A stretch of DNA of 64,000 bases from NCBI GenBank assembly GCA_976226885.1, contig OZ320322.1:29016001-29080000 (forward strand), written 5' to 3'. The notes under the pieces were generated by a model. That model did no database searches and was not told where the DNA came from. It was given only the letters and a program-made list of their open reading frames with translations. The DNA is from Iphione sp. A-MEVVRFRX5. Its lineage: Eukaryota. The position numbers were made by a program, and so were the translations under genes. Shown piece by piece: positions 53,001-61,626 of the stretch. How positions within the stretch are numbered: the stretch's first letter is position 1; every line of letters begins with the position of its first letter.

Positions 53001-56000
53001 TGTGCCCTACATATTCTCCTCATGGTATGAAACTTTGTCAAAGGCAAATGCAGTTGACGCTCACTTAGAGACCACATCACAGGTAAGACCAGACCACAAC
53101 AAAGACTAGACTTAATACATTTATTTCTATATAGGGATTTCTTTCTTTTACTACCTCTATATAGCAAAACGATACGAGAAGAGACTAGACCAAAGTTTAT
53201 TGTAGTGGTATATGTTAATTATATATACACGTGTACAACTGATACGAGGCCCATTTTTTGAGTATCTTAGAGATGGGTTTGTTCATCACAAAGAAATAAT
53301 TTCATTAGGAAGGAGCTTTTTTCTAGTGGTTTCGCTAAAAGAGGTACAACTGTACAAATATTGTTGTATTGGACAATACCTTCCAGCTTGAGGCTCAGTC
53401 ATTGCAATGGCACCAATACATTTTCCTGCTGTCATTCTAGGTAGAAACTTCTCTATCTGTTCTTGCGTGCCATATGAAGAAATATAAGGCATGACAATTT
53501 CTGAATGAAGTTGGAATCCAAATCCATAGTCGTTCACGTAGCCCCTGAAAAAGGTGTTTGCAACATGGGATTACAAAGTGCACTCGGTATATACAGCTGA
53601 TAAATATTCCTCCTGAAGTGGTTCTTTGCTATAAAATTCACAGTACTTAGTTCAATGTATGTTGAAAAGTACATGTACAACCAGGTACAGTGTATAACTT
53701 CTTGAGTCATTTAGTGGAATCAAATGCGTCTAGACGTTCGTTTGTTGTATGGGCTCTGCTCCCCCAAAGGGGAAGCGAGGTGCTTCACCACAAAGCACAG
53801 TAACTGGCTTCAAGGCCTGTGTCTCTATTATAGTTCTTGAGAATTGCTTCGAAGTCCCAGGCTTGGGAACACATACAGGCTCACCCATCATAGGCTACTG
53901 TTGAGAAAACGTACAGTCGATTCTCCCCCTTTGTACATGTCTGCAACGTGGACGCAACTCAAATGCAGATGATTCAGCTCAGAACGGAATAAATTGGCAT
54001 ACATAATGTACATGTATGTAGATGTGTAAACCATCGAAGTATTGATGAATAAATAAGGTCCACCAGTAGATCCAGTCTTGATCATTATTCCATGAAGGTT
54101 AACAAGCAACTGACAACAATCACAGTAGCTTGGCTGTATTTATAGATCTTGGCCCCCATTTTCTATGGGGCCAACACTGTGATAATACCAGTGGATGCTG
54201 TCCCCCCACAATGTAGCAATACCGTGTCAATACAACAATACAGTGGCAATACAACAATACTGTGGCAATACCAGGGAACACTGTCCCCAACATAACTCTG
54301 TATTTACACCAGGCCCTCCTTCTAAGCATCCGTGACAAACAACTTATTTGAGATATCACAATATAACAAGACATTTCTAACCGGTACACCAATTTTCACA
54401 GAGCATCCCCCCCTCTCTCAAGGTGTTGTCACTGAATTTGGGTTAACAGTGAGGCTTTAGAGGTACTTTTCACAAGTTGACATGAAAACCCCCTGTAGAC
54501 GTGTTGTCACACTGATTTGGAGCTGCAGGGAAGCCTTAGAGCACTTTTACGAATACTGATGAATAAAGATACTAGAAACCCCAAATTGAACAGTTCTTGG
54601 CTTTATTTATGAGGTTGACATGTAACAATCACAAGCTATCGTGGTGTCACCACCACTTCATCAGGTGAACATGTGAAGCAACGGTTCTGGCTAACTGGCT
54701 TTTATACTAAACAGTTGCTAGTGTTTATTTGCTTGGTAACAAATCACAAGGGGCCTTGCCCACAACAGTTCTGCAGTCAAGTCTAGGATAGATGCTGATT
54801 GGTTGAAGTAATTATTAATGTCAATAGATCATGAATCTGAATCAATAATGAGTAACAAGTCCAAAAAAGTCCAGAATAACTATCAATAAGCTCTGGAAAA
54901 AGTCCAATAACATCTGGAATAGGAAATATCAACAATAATCACAGTTTAAATATCACAGTAACAATAAAAAAAAAAACGGTCATGTCCGGAGGCGGTCCGA
55001 GATCAAGGCAGTGGATAATGGCAGTGTGATACTACATGACCAAAGGACTAATTGTGGCGCTGGTTAATCCAAGATGGTAAGTAACGATGCTTCAAGTGCA
55101 TAAAGATCACAAGGTCCTCAGCCAGTGCAGGAGACAGTTCTTCTGCTCGAATGAGGAAGTCCCAAATCTGCCGGTGAGTAAGTCCATACGGTGGGGAAGT
55201 GACACTCGGTGGAGTGTCTGTAAAGCCCCCATGTGGAGTATGAAGAGGCGGAACAATGGTGTCGTCCCGTGTAGATGTGATCACAGTAATAGCGGTGCTG
55301 GCTGAGGACACCAACTCGGTTGAGTCAGTGCTCGAGATGGTCATCGGAGTGGATGTGTCTCTGGAGTTGTCAGTGGCTGTGTCTGTCTTGGTAGAGTCGC
55401 TCCCCGAAATCACAATCGGGGAGTTGGAGCTGCCTGACTTGGTTGGTACATGCTTGGCCGCCCCCGGTGTACCGTCGTCATCATCGTCGTCGCTGATGTA
55501 TAAATCATCATGCAGTTGGGTTCTGTCGGTCACAGTTGATGGGGTGGTGGGGGCTTGGTTCTCTTTGTCGCCCGGACGAGAGTGATTGGTAGAGTTGTCA
55601 GAATCTTCGGTTAGATCGATGTACTGACAGCCCTCCATAGGAGTCGCAGGTGACTGTAGTGCAGGGAACCGGCGTTGTTCGGGAGTCAAGTTAGTGCCCA
55701 CCGATAAAATGGAGCTCGCATCGTATAGGCACCTTGTCATACGGATGTGGTGTTCATCTATGAGAGGGGTGCCAGCCTCACTTGGGGTGTTTGGTAGCTG
55801 TGGCTCACTAGTCGGTGGCTTGAACCTAGGGAACCCGTCGCGGTTGATGATACCCCGACCTGTCCCAGGCTCGACTGGGTGGTTAATCAGGGTGCGGCGT
55901 ACTCTGCTCTCTGCAGGTGGGACCCAAGGACCAGGCTGAAAGGCATTATTGCTGGCATCACTGTTCAGATTACTGGCATCCCCCCCTGCTCCCATATGCT

Positions 56001-59000
56001 TGTCCTTGTGATGGCGCTGCAAGGCTGATTTGTGTGTATAAGTTTTTGGGCAAAGGTCACATTTAAATTCCCTTGCATAATCTTCATGTTGCTTGGCTAG
56101 GTGTGTCCTAAGCGATTTAGTCCCAACCAACGGCACCTTGCAGACCGGGCAGTCAAACACAACCGACGCCATTGTATCGTCGAACAGATCAAACGGTTCA
56201 AAAACGTCTTACCGGAGCGGTTGTCAACGGTGGGAAGTTCACAACGGTTTACGCAACTGTTCGACTGTTCATTCACGGATATTAAGTTCCTGTGGTCTGT
56301 AAGTTTGAAGCAGTATAATCAACGACTCTTCGAGCCGCAACCGTTCGTTAAGGTGGCACGCGCTGTTGTCTACACACATAATCGTGACGTCATCGATAGT
56401 GCAGTTCGCGTTGAAGTGGAGAGCCACCGGCTTTATTTCTCGACAGTTTCTTATGTCGTTTAAGTGTTGCAACAACCGTGTGTGAACGGTATTACTTGTT
56501 TGGCCGATATATTTTTTATGGCAACGGTTGCACATAATACAATATACGACATTGGTCGAACGGCAGTTGTTGTTGCCGACTGTTCGAAACCGTTGGCTGC
56601 CGTCGTGGTTGGCAACCGACGTTCCTTCAATAACACGGGCGCAGGTTGAACAACGGGGTCTGCCGCATCTACTCATCCCTCTCTGCCTCACAGGTTTTGG
56701 ATAGGTAGAATTTGTCAATATTTCCTTCAGGTTTCTGTTTTTTTTTGTAGGCCATGATAATGCAATATTGTAGGAGATTTGCATTCCCAGGTGAGTGTGC
56801 TAAGATGTTGTATGCCTGTTGTACAGTCTGTTTGTGAGAAGGTTGTGTGGGACCGTGATAGGTAGTGACATAGGCAATTTTCTTCTCGGCAGCTATTGTT
56901 TCCTCTTGAAAGATGGATAACCTATCCATGGTACGTACCCTCCTGTAGCTCTCAATCAATAGTTTCCTGGGGTAGCCTCGTGCTCTGAAATGGCCCATCA
57001 TAGTGTTGGCGAACATGTCGAAAAATTTGATTTCTGTGCATATCATCCCTACCCTCAGTAGTTGGCTGAATGGGATTGAAGATTTTTGTGTATGGGGGTG
57101 GTAGCTCTGGTAGTGTAGGTACAGATTCGCATCCGTCGGTTTCTTGTGGAGTTTGGTGAAGAGACGATAGTTCCTTTTGTAGACCACTGTGTCCAAGAAG
57201 ACTATTTCCTCCTTGCTTGATTCATGGGTGAATTTGATCGTATCATGGGCTTGGTTCAGGTAAGTGATGAATTCTTGTAGGTCATCATCAGTGCCTCTGA
57301 ATATCATGAAGATATCGTCGATGAAGCGCAGCCAGATACGGGGTTGTCGTGGTGCATCCCTCAGTAGTTTCCTTTCAAGGTGTCCCATGAAGAGATTAGT
57401 GTAGCTCGGTGCCATTTGTGTGCCCATTGCTGTTCCATGTTTTTGATGGAATATCTTGTTGTCAAACGCAAAGCTGTTGAATTTTAGGATGTACAGCATC
57501 AGTCTTAGGATGACCCATGTGGCTGGTTCTTGTGTAGGTCCCTGCATGAGATAGTCCCTAGTGGCTGCGAGGCCTTCAGAGTGGGGAATGTTAGTGTACA
57601 GGGCTGATACATCCACGGTAACCAGATGGTCATCGTTGTTGATTCTGATGTCAGAGATCTTCTCAATAAAGTCTTTGGTGTCGCGTATGTGACTGGGTAG
57701 GTTCGTAACATAGGGACGCAAAAAGCAGTCGACGTAGGACGAGATCTTCTCGGTCGGGCAACCGCAGGCGGAAACTATTGGGTGCCCCGGTACCCCCATT
57801 TTGTGCACTTTGGGTAGGAAATAAATGGAAGGCGTACGTGGGTTCTTGATGACCAGGGCGTGTGCAGCATCTGTGGGTAGAGCACCAGTGATACAGCATT
57901 GGTTAACAAAGTTCTTAATTTCAGATAGATATTCGTTGGTTGGGTCATGGTCTAATTGTTCATAGTGGAGCTGGTTCGTCAATTGGCGATATGCTTCGTC
58001 GACGTAGTCTGTAGTGTTTTGGACTACTACTGCACCCCCTTTGTCCGCTTGTTTGATAATGATAGATGAGTCTAGGCTGAGGGAACGGATGGCCTTCACT
58101 TCGTCTGGTGTCAGGTTGTTGCGGGCTGACGGTACATTTCTCACTGGTAGCTGGCCTTCTATGGTGGTTAAGTAGCAATCGAGGAACTTGTCCTTGCCTT
58201 GTTGTGGAGTCCATCCAGAGGATTCCTTGAGATGGCTTAGCGGTGTGATCACTTCTTCACGGTCCTGGTCCTGAAATAAATGTTGTAGTCTCATACGGCG
58301 TGCAAATAGGTAGAAATCTCTGTATGTGTGGGCAGGGTGCGGGTTTGGGCTTGTTGGTATGAAAGTTAGTCCCCGCGTCAGCAGGGTGGTCTCGGCATTG
58401 TTTAGGACTCGGTTAGAAAAATTTATTACCGCGGTGGTCTCGGTTGAGGACGGAAGGATGTTTGGGATGCGGATGAACCTCCTGTTTTTCGGCTTCTGTG
58501 TTCCCGGAGTTCTGTCTTGAGGCTGGTCTCGTAGTTGTCCAGCAGGTTGATGACCGTCGTGTGTTCTTCCGTGCTGATCTCCGTTTTGGCCCTTTCTAGT
58601 AGGGTGGCCAATTCTGCGTTCAGTCGGTCGCATCTGGATTTCCAATAACGATGTAAGATTTCTGTCAGAGATTGTGCTAGACCGGTGACAGCTGTTTCCC
58701 ACTCTAGCAGGAATTCAGTTGATATGTCGGGGATCTGTGCTGTGACGTTTGGAATTAGGCCTCTTGGTGCTGTGTGCATGGATATGTGGTGTTTTAGTAG
58801 CGTTTGATGGTGTCGGGAAGTGATGCACCCTTTCTTCACTTTCTTCAGAGTGCAATACCATACGTTGCTCTGTTGTGATAATGGGCCGGGCGACGTGGGT
58901 GCTGTCAGAGTGTTCGTAGAAGAAGATGGCGACGGTGTGCGTGGTCTTGTAGGTCCTGTTGTGCTCGTGGATGGCACTTCTAGTAGGTTCGTTTGTTGAC

Positions 59001-61626
59001 CTTGTGCTGAGGTTGTTCGTGGGCGCTTGTTAGTAGGTTTAGAGCCTCCCTCGGTTGCCATAGTGTTGCTCCTGTGTTGGCTGACGCCTCTCTTGGCAGC
59101 GGATCCATTGGATACTGTTGGCGGACGGTTGCACCTTCAGCTGGTTGAAATAATTGTATTCCGCGAACTGTACGCTGTCGTTGTAGGAGCTTGTTCTTCA
59201 ATGGGGGATCCAAATGGATACAACTAGTAAACTGTGTGTGAAAACTGATGAATAAAGATACTAGAAACCCCAAATTGAACAGTTCTTGGCTTTATTTATG
59301 AGGTTGACATGTAACAATCACAAGCTTTCGTGGTGTCACCACCACTTCATCAGGTTAACATGTGAAGCAACGGTTCTGGCTAACTGGCTTTTATACTAAA
59401 TGGTTGCTAGTGTTTATTTGCTTGGTAACCAATCACAAGGGGCCTAGCCCACAACAGTTCTGCAGTAAAGTCTAGGATAGATGCTGATTGGTTGAAGTAA
59501 TTATTAATGTCAATAGATCATGAATCTGAATCAATAATGAGTAACAAGTCCAAAAAAGTCCAGAATAACTATCAATAAGCTCTGGAAAAAGTCCAATAAC
59601 ATCTGGAATAGGAAATATCAACAATAATCACAGTTTAAATATCACAGTAACAATCCAAAAAAAAGGTACATCACTTTTACGAATATTACTCTTCTGCACT
59701 TTTACGAATATTACTCTTCAAATTCAGCACTTTTTGGGCTCTTGCTTATCAAATACAGCACTTTTGGGATGTGGTTTAACCCCAATTCCATATCCTTCTA
59801 ACAGATCTATAATACAGACACATCTGAAATCAGGGCAGCCTGGGGAAGAACTGAGGATGTCCGGACTTGGGAGAGTTGACTATTTGCACTGGATGTACTT
59901 TCAGATGTGGACTCATAAACAAAACAAACTTCATCAGGGCCAACCTAGCTTATTGAGCCTGGGGAGGTGTGCAACACACTGCTCATAATTAACAGCTCCC
60001 AATTAACACAGCACCTGAGTGTGGTGATGATTGACAGGCAAGCGAGACAGTAGCATGATGGTGTGCTCTCAATACTCGATGTGTTTATGTGCAGCCATCC
60101 CCCAGTGCTGGGATTACAGTGCTAAGGACACTCCCAGAGTATGAGTAGCACCAGACTTGCTGGTGTAAGGGGAAACATGACACCCATAGAGGGGGGGACT
60201 ATTCCACTGACGAGGTGGTGCCCCACAAGTGTATGCATTGCTGGATGTAAAAACCCTAGATAGCAGACTACTCCATAACCTTCAACAGGGCATGCTCCCT
60301 ACAGGGTTAGAGGCTGGTGAAACCATTGGCCCAGCCTACACATCAAGTTGGCATAACATGGGTCTAGTGTAATATGTATGTTCATTTGATGTGAAACTGC
60401 TCGAACTCTAGAGGTGCTTGGTGCCCATGCGATTATCCACTTATCCTGTTCGAAATGCCTGTCATTTGCCTGTAATACCTTTTCTATACTTACTGTTCTT
60501 CCCATGAAATGGCCGCATACATTAAGTCTGCGCCCAGCCCGTAATGTTCCTCAGGTGTGGTTACTCCGAGCAAACCTTGGGCACCGGCAAGTTCCCATAA
60601 CTAGAACAAATACACATGATCGGGGTAAATCATTTGGTCTAAGGCTGACAAGGGATTACAGTAAATGGAACAGCGAATCCTTTTGTCAATTAAGTGAGAA
60701 CAGCAATGAAGGGGTTGCGTTTATCGGTTCTTTCTTGTATTTAGTGTCGCGAAGTTCGTGTATACAGGTAACAGGTATACCTCTGTTAACAAAATGGATG
60801 AATGGCTAAAAATCACCTCATTGTGAGAAATTTCATTAACAGAGTTATGCATGTCCATCAGAGCACCTTAGAATCTTTATGTTACACTTGTTATGAAGAG
60901 ACTTTGTAATAAAGGAACTTCATTCCTAGAGGATTCGCTAACACAGATACACCTGTACATGTGTATCGGAGAATGTGAGGATACACAAGAAATACATCAC
61001 TCTTGCCAGTTTACTATAGTTACTGTGACATTGATAAATCGGCACATTACCACAGTTTGTTTCTAATTTAATTGGAAGCTGCATTGCAAATGCATATACG
61101 GATCTGATAAATACTATAGCTCTTACTCACCTCACGGTCGACTTGGCCCTGTTCTTCATATCTGATGAATAACATATATATGTCATTTACAGTACAAAAC
61201 ATTCACCGACATTGCCTGTTATTATAGCATTCGTTTAAGTTTCCAAAATGTCTATTTACAATGAAAGAAATATAAAAATACCTCTTTCTATTGATGATAA
61301 ACGGTACAAACTACAGGCTTGAGACAAACATGTACATGTACTTAAAATTACATTCCAAGCATCACAGCATATCATGGGGTTTAATCTCCATAGACGCATT
61401 TCAACTCAAATAAGCGCACCTGTCATTATTGGGCACCAATTCCTCCCGGAAGAATTTCCTGGCGCTTGCCCTGAAAATGTCATGCTCCTCAGTGAAAATC
61501 TTCCTGATGCCAATGTCCATGAGGTTAGCGGCGTCGGCTGGCTCAAGCCTATGTTTCATGTTGCCCTCATTATTGGTGATATCGGGGGCTGCTTTGTTCG
61601 ACTGTCTGCATACCTGGATTCCTGCA
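50092..61626 (-). CDS. ACADL: Long-chain acyl-CoA dehydrogenase, copy B, 5'-partial; complement(join(50092-50272,51354-51481,51709-51933,52349-52580,53380-53544,60494-60600,61131-61161,61420-61626))
   Basis: Eight in-frame exons with the same phases as copy A and the same sizes for the six internal exons (31, 107, 165, 232, 225, 128). There are no stops and the same ACADL motifs are present. Exon 1 was not found before the LTR element at 61862. The exon 2 acceptor (61626) is the best of several nearby AGs. Confidence 0.92.
52703..52879. mobile_element. Small Tc1/pogo-like MITE
   Basis: TA|CAGTGGAACCCCTC ... GAGAGTTTCCACTG|TA. Confidence 0.75.
54555..54965 (-). repeat. 3' pseudo-LTR of the Penelope-like element
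   Basis: Seven substitutions relative to 59244-59654 and no indels seen (about 98% identity). Confidence 0.95.
54618..54674 (-). ncRNA. Minimal type I hammerhead ribozyme, core variant (GAAA to GAUA)
   Basis: On -: acaugu-ucac CUGAUGA A GUGGUG guga CACCAC GAUA GC UU guga-uuguu-acaugu. Stems I and II are intact and core A14 is mutated. Confidence 0.7.
55048..56172 (-). CDS. Penelope-borne accessory ORF, 374 aa: two N-terminal C2H2 zinc fingers, Ser/Thr/Pro/Asp-rich middle, helical C-terminus
   Basis: Intact intronless ORF with a strong start context (ACAATGG). It has CPVC-x12-H-x4-H and CDLC-x12-H-x4-H, and lies between the GIY-YIG stop and the 3' pseudo-LTR on the same strand. Confidence 0.8.
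   Translation of the reverse strand: MASVVFDCPVCKVPLVGTKSLRTHLAKQHEDYAREFKCDLCPKTYTHKSALQRHHKDKHMGAGGDASNLNSDASNNAFQPGPWVPPAESRVRRTLINHPVEPGTGRGIINRDGFPRFKPPTSEPQLPNTPSEAGTPLIDEHHIRMTRCLYDASSILSVGTNLTPEQRRFPALQSPATPMEGCQYIDLTEDSDNSTNHSRPGDKENQAPTTPSTVTDRTQLHDDLYISDDDDDDGTPGAAKHVPTKSGSSNSPIVISGSDSTKTDTATDNSRDTSTPMTISSTDSTELVSSASTAITVITSTRDDTIVPPLHTPHGGFTDTPPSVTSPPYGLTHRQIWDFLIRAEELSPALAEDLVIFMHLKHRYLPSWINQRHN
56269..59061 (-). CDS. Penelope polyprotein (N-terminal domain, RT, Cys linker, GIY-YIG), ~930 aa after correcting two homopolymer frameshifts
   Basis: RT motifs KQADKGGAVVV, YFLPKVHK, HPIVS, DVSALYTNIP, GTAMGTQMAPSY and WLRFIDDIF. Linker CGRPRCSTC. Endonuclease VVYCIMCNRCHKKYIGQT...R...H...E...LN. 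The three track ORFs overlap exactly at A-runs. Confidence 0.88.
59244..59654 (-). repeat. 5' pseudo-LTR of the Penelope-like element (CCAAT, TATA, ribozyme, polyA signal)
   Basis: On -: CCAATCAG, then TATAAAAG (59388-59395), the hammerhead, and AATAAA (59291-59296). Confidence 0.95.
59307..59363 (-). ncRNA. Minimal type I hammerhead ribozyme with intact core
   Basis: On -: acaugu-uaac CUGAUGA A GUGGUG guga CACCAC GAAA GC UU guga-uuguu-acaugu. It has a 6-bp stem II and a palindromic AAGCUU stem III, with predicted cleavage between 59322 and 59321. Confidence 0.8.
59990..60370 (+). repeat. Third copy of the dispersed TGATTGACAG repeat family
   Basis: GATGATTGACAGGCAAGC (60026) ... ACTATTCCACTGA ... 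AAAACCCTAGATAGCAGA ... AGGGTTAGAGGCTGGTGAAACCATTGGCCCAGCC. Confidence 0.65.

Follow-up and report, generated by a model that had tools for sequence, protein, structure and literature searches.

In a 64,000-nucleotide stretch of contig OZ320322.1 from Iphione sp. A-MEVVRFRX5 (assembly GCA_976226885.1, positions 29,016,001 to 29,080,000 of the forward strand; the whole stretch is called the window here), a Penelope-like element (PLE) was identified which encodes, downstream of its reverse transcriptase (RT) and GIY-YIG endonuclease (EN), a separate protein with two C2H2 zinc fingers, designated ORF3 for the third open reading frame (ORF). The best explanation, which is considered probable, is that the element represents a clade of three-cistron, Neptune-type PLEs in which ORF3 is kept by selection and would act as an adaptor or regulator of the DNA-binding type, produced from an internal promoter-like spacer. 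Canonical endonuclease-bearing (EN+) PLEs have been described as single-ORF elements (Craig et al. 2021, PMC8557442); three cistrons were found instead in all families examined in the host genome. An earlier note, made from the window alone, had described a bicistronic element with one RT and GIY-YIG gene followed by a zinc-finger ORF. The downstream gene was found as proposed, but the element contains three ORFs, and in the window copy the RT and EN frames are broken apart. The element, ORF3 and the spacer in front of it are located as follows.

54556-59671, minus strand: full-length PLE, delimited by pseudo-LTRs (pLTRs) and a target-site duplication
56173-56268, minus strand: spacer of 96 nt from the EN stop codon to the ORF3 ATG, with three AACNGTT motifs, no ATG and three stop codons in the EN frame
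56213-56207, minus strand: GGTAAGA within the spacer
55048-56172, minus strand: ORF3, 374 aa, intact, with C2H2 fingers as the only Pfam match (zf-C2H2, E 6e-6)
56151-56086, minus strand: ORF3 finger 1, C-x2-C-x12-H-x4-H
56061-55996, minus strand: ORF3 finger 2, C-x2-C-x12-H-x4-H
55926-55876, minus strand: ORF3 motif W.PPAES..RR.LINHP
55623-55597, minus strand: ORF3 motif YIDLTEDSD
55506-55474, minus strand: ORF3 motif DLYISDDDDDD
55191-55180, minus strand: PYGL of ORF3, followed by the C-terminal helical hairpin

The ORF3 frame is free of stop codons, and both its placement on the same strand 96 nt after the GIY-YIG stop and its strong start context (ACAATGG) are as the earlier note had given them. 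The distance of 82 nt to the 3' pLTR holds when it is counted to the ATTGTTACTG start of the repeat; 64 nt separate ORF3 from the 3' pLTR when its start is taken at 54983. No consistent GT..AG pair indicating an intron was seen after finger 2 in ten copies from nine families. The ORF3 frames of the loci L018 and L025 look split, which is due to single in-frame stop codons.

Within the window family, ORF3 is linked to RT in all copies, including those which are truncated at the 5' end and one of 69% identity, in agreement with the claim that the gene is copied with the element. The copy L042 is full length and 89% identical to the window copy, has its own 8-bp duplication and contains an intact ORF3 of 374 aa. 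The copies L040 and L041 are both 5'-truncated; ORF3 is intact in L040, which is 92% identical, and has one frameshift in L041. L043, of 69-75% identity, is old and its ORF3 has decayed, and L044, likewise 5'-truncated, consists only of a short 3' tail. Loss of 5' sequence while ORF3 is retained is expected from target-primed reverse transcription, which starts from the 3' end. Adjacent to L043 (L043:79-747, contig C17), another two-finger ORF of 223 aa was identified, which is about 30% identical to ORF3 and comes from another PLE family, suggesting that PLEs have inserted into or next to one another.

A search of the host genome with RT yielded 4402 candidate places, from which the 27 best distinct RT loci, with an RT 50-63% identical to the query, were taken to represent other families. 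All 27 loci contain an ORF3 homologue which opens with two C2H2 fingers, in the same order ORF1-ORF2-ORF3; in the intact copies, ORF1 comprises about 210 aa and the RT-EN ORF about 788 aa. With a profile built from the non-finger part of ORF3, 134 places were found in the host genome, at least about 55 of which are near full length and stop-free (321-440 aa). In this clade of PLEs, ORF3 is a component which is stably kept and passed on vertically.

Outside the host genome, RT homologues are numerous (580 at E<=1e-20, with PF00078, PF28514 and PF26215, PF01541 being present or not), the nearest public ones being just 42-48% identical. An ORF3 following RT-EN was found in L047 and L048 from ENA assembly ERZ25767047 (393 and 383 aa), in L053 from Logan run ERR14368249 (337 aa), in L049 from Argopecten irradians (219 aa) and in L054 from Ylistrum balloti (183 aa). 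In Argopecten irradians, L049:1997-6906 presents a head-to-tail array of an EN end, ORF3, ORF1, RT-EN and again ORF3. ORF3 is absent from the more distant PLEs of the coral Oculina (38%), ERZ25069865 (36%), the brittle star Amphiura and GCA_029979705.1 (42%). In the last of these (L055:4726-6729), no finger ORF is present downstream of the EN; two other ORFs are found there, one of 130 aa and one long and S/T/P-rich, which may represent a replaced or finger-less version of ORF3.

In the RT tree, the 15 ORF3-bearing elements are located on one side of a branch, so that one change of state suffices, and the ORF3 tree reproduces all strongly supported RT groupings. The agreement of the two trees implies that ORF3 has travelled with RT since the base of the clade. 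It had been plausible beforehand, given the description of canonical EN+ PLEs as single-ORF elements (PMC8557442), that only the window copy had gained a host zinc-finger gene or flank in a one-off transduction. This is refuted by the identical placement of ORF3 in all copies and families examined and in elements from other sources, together with the congruence of the trees, and the probability left to it is next to nil.

For the ORF3 protein, 14 sequences were aligned, most host ORF3s ending at the edge of the locus. None of the eight zinc ligands varies, and the KSAL.R helix of finger 2 is conserved in the host families and in L053. The linker between the fingers is not TGEKP-like. Further alignment blocks read W..P.ES..RR.LI.HP...G.GR.VINRD and NTP..TETPL.DE. 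A [YVM][IV]DLT motif with an acidic or serine tail is present in eight of the nine host ORF3s, and the L..DL.LSDDD motif is near-universal (12 of 14, including the scallop proteins). The C-terminus follows the consensus PYGL...L.......L.ED....L.LK.

The AlphaFold model contains two confident beta-beta-alpha fingers (residues 1-60; pLDDT 76-90), one helix (residues 140-157) and a helical hairpin (residues 333-363); the remainder is predicted to be disordered, amounting to about 60% of the protein, and is rich in S, T, P and D. The Pfam models zf-C2H2 and zf-C2H2_4 match 12-14 of the 14 proteins, and zf-C2H2_jaz, a model of the dsRNA type, matches seven. When compared with the PDB by Foldseek, the finger pair was weakly similar to the DNA-bound fingers of CTCF, Tramtrack, ZBTB7A and Kaiso (E about 3e-3); these matches are of the generic finger type, and none reached E<=1e-3. 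A search of 5.8 billion proteins with the single ORF3 sequence gave no match at E<=1e-3, and the whole-ORF3 profile against 1.84 billion representatives was dominated by multi-finger proteins, with full-length matches only to the two ERZ25767047 ORF3s. With the profile of the non-finger part, the matches in the protein search were limited to three proteins of Logan runs ERR14368249/8. A feature search of the ESM Atlas for ORF3 gave no usable match. The prediction of a complex between ORF1 and the C-terminal hairpin of ORF3 scored 0.01, which speaks neither for nor against binding.

The ratio of nonsynonymous to synonymous substitution rates (dN/dS) of ORF3, determined for the window copy against two intact relatives, is 0.20-0.21 with a 95% bootstrap interval of 0.12-0.32. 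The ratio is lowest in the fingers (0.00-0.04, against a dS of 0.3-0.5), followed by the last 54 codons (0.09-0.17) and the middle part (0.26-0.31). In pairs from three other families, values of 0.11-0.13 were obtained. For comparison, dN/dS between the window copy and L042 is 0.07 for RT and 0.12 for ORF1. Since copies drift neutrally after insertion, all these values are upper bounds for the active lineages. This check did not give the neutral decay which the earlier note had named as a possible outcome; purifying selection acts on ORF3, with the greatest strength on the fingers and the C-terminal helices. An origin as a remnant that is neutral or decaying, or as a frame open by chance in low-complexity sequence, would be in keeping with the extent of the disordered S/T/P/D-rich part and with the faster evolution of the middle region. 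For the fingers and the C-terminus this is refuted by the dN/dS of 0.20 with an upper bound of 0.32 and of about zero in the fingers, and the zinc ligands are invariant in 14 divergent sequences while about 55 frames are full length and stop-free. Such an origin is accordingly regarded as scarcely credible.

The spacer in front of ORF3 varies in length across families (2, 4, 27, 38, 39, 54, 67, 75, 89, 90, 94, 96-98 and 133 nt). Each ORF3 starts with an ATG of its own; position -3 is a purine in all families, and position +4 is a G in nearly all. Three stop codons in the spacer, and spacer lengths which do not maintain the frame, identify ORF3 as a separate cistron. The 96-nt spacer does leave ORF3 of the window copy in the EN frame, and stop and ATG are 2-4 nt apart in the scallop elements, as would suit a C-terminal extension of the RT-EN polyprotein made by stop readthrough or frameshifting. 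The three further in-frame stops, the variable spacer lengths and the ATG of ORF3 itself render such an extension very improbable.

The palindromic motif AACNGTT occurs 30 times in the window, and 13 of these sites are inside the element, at a density about ten times that of the remaining window. All 13 are located either in the pLTRs, three of them in the 5' pLTR, or in the 400 nt before the ORF3 ATG (spans 54589-54770, 59278-59459 and 56192-56594); in the pLTRs they surround the CCAAT and TATAAAAG boxes. Clustering was also found in the other host families, except for the L032 family, but not in the foreign elements. AACNGTT is a candidate binding site for a host factor or for ORF3 itself. 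An array which is host-specific and common to pLTR and spacer favours an internal promoter and a subgenomic ORF3 RNA. The position of ORF3 downstream of a 2.4-kb ORF makes access by scanning unlikely and a subgenomic RNA plausible. In the host, ORF3 would most likely be expressed from a subgenomic transcript starting in or near the spacer. In the scallop relatives, the 2-4 nt between stop and ATG (2 nt in L049) suggest termination-reinitiation on the full-length RNA, which would be the more likely route there.

Families with long spacers have in common a conserved GTRAGT-like motif which resembles a 5' splice site and lies 40-60 nt before the ORF3 ATG; it reads GGTAAGA in the window copy and GTGAGTA in four other families (spacers of L013, L016, L018 and L020). 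No AG is present between this motif and the ATG in the window family, L013 or L016. A scan for bacterial-type promoters and terminators gave matches at chance level, which are irrelevant to the element.

Based on its predicted structure, ORF3 would consist of N-terminal fingers of the DNA-binding type, a long disordered region with short motifs and a terminal helical hairpin. Such a protein could serve as a nuclear, nucleic-acid-binding adaptor or regulator for the element. Its fingers would bind DNA, possibly the AACNGTT arrays of the pLTR promoter region and of the spacer preceding ORF3, and its linear motifs would recruit host factors. The [YV][IV]DLT-acidic motif of ORF3 resembles the classic motif by which PIAS and RNF4 interact with SUMO, VIDLT or IVDLT followed by an acidic tail. 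In its most specific form, this proposal makes ORF3 a protein like a transcription factor, with the fingers on AACNGTT and the motifs docking to SUMO or host chromatin, for auto-regulation, chromatin tethering or a blunting of SUMO-dependent silencing; in this detail it is rather unlikely.

A different function is conceivable, in which ORF3 is an RNA-binding chaperone or packaging protein, comparable to gag or to ORF1 of LINEs, and is made by termination-reinitiation on the full-length RNA. Half of the ORF3 proteins match zf-C2H2_jaz, the short scallop spacers are typical of coupled translation, and a gag-like zinc-knuckle ORF is known from one Chlamys PLE (PMC8557442). However, the spacing C-x2-C-x12-H-x4-H is classical and the best fold matches are DNA-bound fingers, ORF1 already provides an N-terminal nucleic-acid-binding or dimerising domain (PMC11167929), and the spacer contains the motif array of the pLTR promoter region. 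This function is thus judged unlikely, while still a serious contender.

Several observations weigh against a DNA-binding regulator that is expressed from its own promoter and has marked the clade from its base. The similarity to DNA-binding fingers is weak and of a generic kind, C2H2 fingers may also bind RNA or protein, and it is seven of the 14 proteins that match zf-C2H2_jaz. SUMO binding is read from motif resemblance, and the transcription, translation and expression route of ORF3 are read from sequence. The spacer of the window copy contains no TATA box, and its AACNGTT array could equally be a signal at the RNA level or a site for a host factor unrelated to ORF3. In the RT tree, the base of the ORF3-bearing clade relative to L055 is weakly supported (55).

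The remaining coding regions of the element are the following.

58426-59061, minus strand: ORF1, 211 aa, intact, with a KRxRT motif resembling a nuclear localisation signal, an S/P-rich stretch and the conserved N-terminal PLE domain
56669-58702, minus strand: RT frame, open over 677 codons, first in-frame ATG at 58633-58631, RVT_1 E 2.4e-10
56738-56746, minus strand: A9 run where the RT and EN frames part
56269-56784, minus strand: EN frame, 171 codons, GIY-YIG PF01541 E 1.6e-5, Pfam match at about 56317-56550

In the translated EN frame, a C-x4-C-x2-C linker finger precedes the GIY-YIG core, and both cysteines of the CCHH motif are located between GIY and YIG (VVY-C-x2-C...YIG...H...H). The CX2-5CxxC linker has been reported for Neptune and Nematis, but not for Penelope or Poseidon, and together with the position of the two cysteines it serves to distinguish these groups (Craig et al. 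2021, PMC8557442). From the linker finger and the CCHH motif, the element is assigned to the Neptune-type endonuclease-bearing PLEs; this assignment is made from motifs, the RT tree being composed of the elements compared here.

ORF1 and RT, the latter in the -1 frame, have an overlap of about 70 codons. The same -1 overlap recurs in every host-genome family examined and does not result from damage. Within it (58426-58702 and the matching part of L013-L037), a conserved A-rich stretch is followed by GGTTCATCCGCATC-like sequence, which is coding in both frames, and an ATG in the RT frame is conserved about 70 codons upstream. Translation of RT may involve programmed frameshifting or a separate initiation, and either could apply. 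For some PLE types it has been described that a frameshift with a pseudoknot can separate ORF1 (Craig et al. 2021, PMC8557442). In the foreign relative L053, ORF1 is fused in frame to RT, giving 941 aa.

In contrast to this overlap, the break between the RT and EN frames is private to the window copy, while L040, L041 and L042 have one continuous frame. The break in the A9 run could be a genuine lesion, or it could stem from a homopolymer error in assembly. With RT and EN in different frames, the window copy as assembled is not autonomous in spite of its similar pLTRs, and its movement would depend on proteins which relatives provide.

The termini of the element comprise the following features.

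59672-59685, minus strand: upstream target-site duplication, 14 bp, TATTCGTAAAAGTG on the minus strand, adjoining the 5' pLTR
54542-54555, minus strand: downstream target-site duplication, 14 bp, the identical 14 nt after the 3' pLTR
59245-59671, minus strand: 5' pLTR, direct terminal repeat
54556-54983, minus strand: 3' pLTR, with the same boxes as the 5' pLTR except for the hammerhead GATA
59491-59484, minus strand: CCAAT box in the 5' pLTR
59395-59388, minus strand: TATAAAAG box in the 5' pLTR
59353-59347, minus strand: hammerhead core box CTGATGA in the 5' pLTR
59335-59326, minus strand: hammerhead stem plus GAAA in the 5' pLTR
59296-59291, minus strand: AATAAA in the 5' pLTR, inside the match to the searched AATAAAGCC (59296-59288)

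The identical 14 nt at both ends represent the target-site duplication of a single insertion event. A PLE with pLTRs had been placed at 54555-59654 before; element and repeats are real, but the extent is slightly wider (54556-59671). The pLTRs of about 425 nt differ at 9 of about 420 aligned columns, in line with the identity of about 98% given previously, and the pLTR pair of L042 differs at a single position. Hammerhead core boxes and a GC-rich stem are present in both pLTRs (59326-59353 and 54637-54664); no match to Rfam was obtained at E<=1. One box reads GATA in the 3' pLTR and GAAA in the 5' pLTR and in L042, and the region contains GTTAACC in the 5' pLTR where other copies have GTTCACC. 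The leader between the 5' pLTR and the ORF1 ATG (59062-59235 against L042:2569-2750) is 96.6% identical and the pLTR 93%. At synonymous sites, the window copy and L042 differ by 0.3-0.6, so that constraint on these non-coding parts exceeds that on silent sites of the genes.

The target-site duplication varies in length, with 14 bp in the window copy and 8 bp in L042, and no common target motif was seen among five insertion sites. The insertion is interstitial and bears such a duplication, which differs from the endonuclease-lacking, telomeric elements of the Athena/Terminon type. In the target upstream of the element (59672-59735), the 21-nt stretch AGAGTAATATTCGTAAAAGTG occurs twice in tandem, the target-site duplication being formed by its final 14 nt. 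At a distance of about 1 kb from the 3' end of the element, an open frame at 53286-53537 on the minus strand resembles an acyl-CoA dehydrogenase exon (…IGAIAMTEP…); the element may thus sit in or beside a host gene.

With the Neptune-clade EN+ PLEs (Arkhipova 2006; PMC8557442), the element shares the PLE RT, the C-terminal GIY-YIG domain with CCHH, the CX2-5CxxC linker, pLTRs with hammerhead-like boxes, variable duplications, 5' truncation and an optional frameshifted ORF1. It differs in the extra, separately initiated two-C2H2 gene between the EN stop and the 3' pLTR, which is present throughout the clade. The published PLE survey lists an optional frameshifted ORF1, one upstream gag-like zinc-knuckle ORF in Chlamys and extra domains in the main ORF, but no downstream C2H2 ORF in EN+ PLEs (PMC8557442). 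Chlamys-2_cBra (PMC8557442) likewise is an EN+ PLE with an additional zinc-binding ORF beside RT/EN. However, that ORF is located upstream and is of the gag-like zf-CCHC type, in an algal element with an N-terminal EN, whereas the ORF described here is located downstream, in animal elements with a C-terminal EN, and combines classical C2H2 fingers with a long disordered tail. PLEs with several ORFs have been known only among the endonuclease-deficient Athena/Terminon elements of bdelloid rotifers, in which PLE RTs are accompanied by accessory ORFs common to several families (PMC5408684). These elements differ in being endonuclease-deficient, telomere-associated and up to 40 kb in size, and their accessory ORFs are enzymatic (GDSL, DEDDy) or of the coiled-coil/transmembrane type, with no C2H2 ORF in a compact interstitial element of 5 kb.

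Two further systems offer partial parallels. In R2 and other site-specific non-LTR retrotransposons, N-terminal C2H2 motifs (one to three fingers) and Myb motifs bind DNA, so that R2 provides a model of how classical C2H2 fingers can guide a target-primed retroelement to DNA. There, the fingers are part of a single RT polyprotein with site-specific insertion, whereas here a separate protein bears them and no target motif is common to the five insertion sites examined. The bicistronic RNA of LINE-1 contains ORF1 and ORF2 with a short spacer and unconventional reinitiation, and thus also has successive cistrons separated by tens of nucleotides; the accessory protein of L1 is encoded upstream of RT, while ORF3 is encoded downstream.

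In the accessible literature, with Repbase, Dfam and most subscription journals outside its scope, no downstream C2H2 ORF was found for EN+ PLEs, and such an ORF is not mentioned in the work on the rotifer EN+ Penelope, the Anolis element, the killifish Neptune or animal retrozymes. The three-ORF layout with a downstream C2H2 gene thus appears to be a variant of EN+ PLEs not described in this literature, where the search for a precedent proposed in the earlier note found none. Mollusc and annelid PLE families are numerous in Repbase (PMC8557442), and a consensus there or in Dfam, or a subscription paper, might already contain the architecture, so that only the instance would be new. Set against the accessible literature, which contains no downstream C2H2 ORF in EN+ PLEs, this is doubtful, while more than a formality.

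PLEs are the least understood class of retrotransposons, and EN+ PLEs have been modelled as one-protein machines; the sole biochemical reconstitution was made with one polyprotein (PMC11167929). That a third gene is kept by selection, in many families and in at least two animal groups, points to a step in the PLE life cycle beyond the RT-EN protein. It may consist in targeting to the nucleus or to chromatin, in self-regulation or in coping with host silencing. For annotation, intact C2H2 genes beside PLE RTs in annelid and mollusc genomes are to be regarded as transposon genes and not as host transcription factors, and ORF3 serves as a marker for the classification of a PLE subclade. Its small two-finger product, in which the conserved motifs are defined, is an approachable starting point for study. 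If the regulatory role proposed for it is true, ORF3 would be the first regulatory accessory gene in EN+ PLEs, either kept since before the split of annelid-type and bivalve lineages or moved between them.

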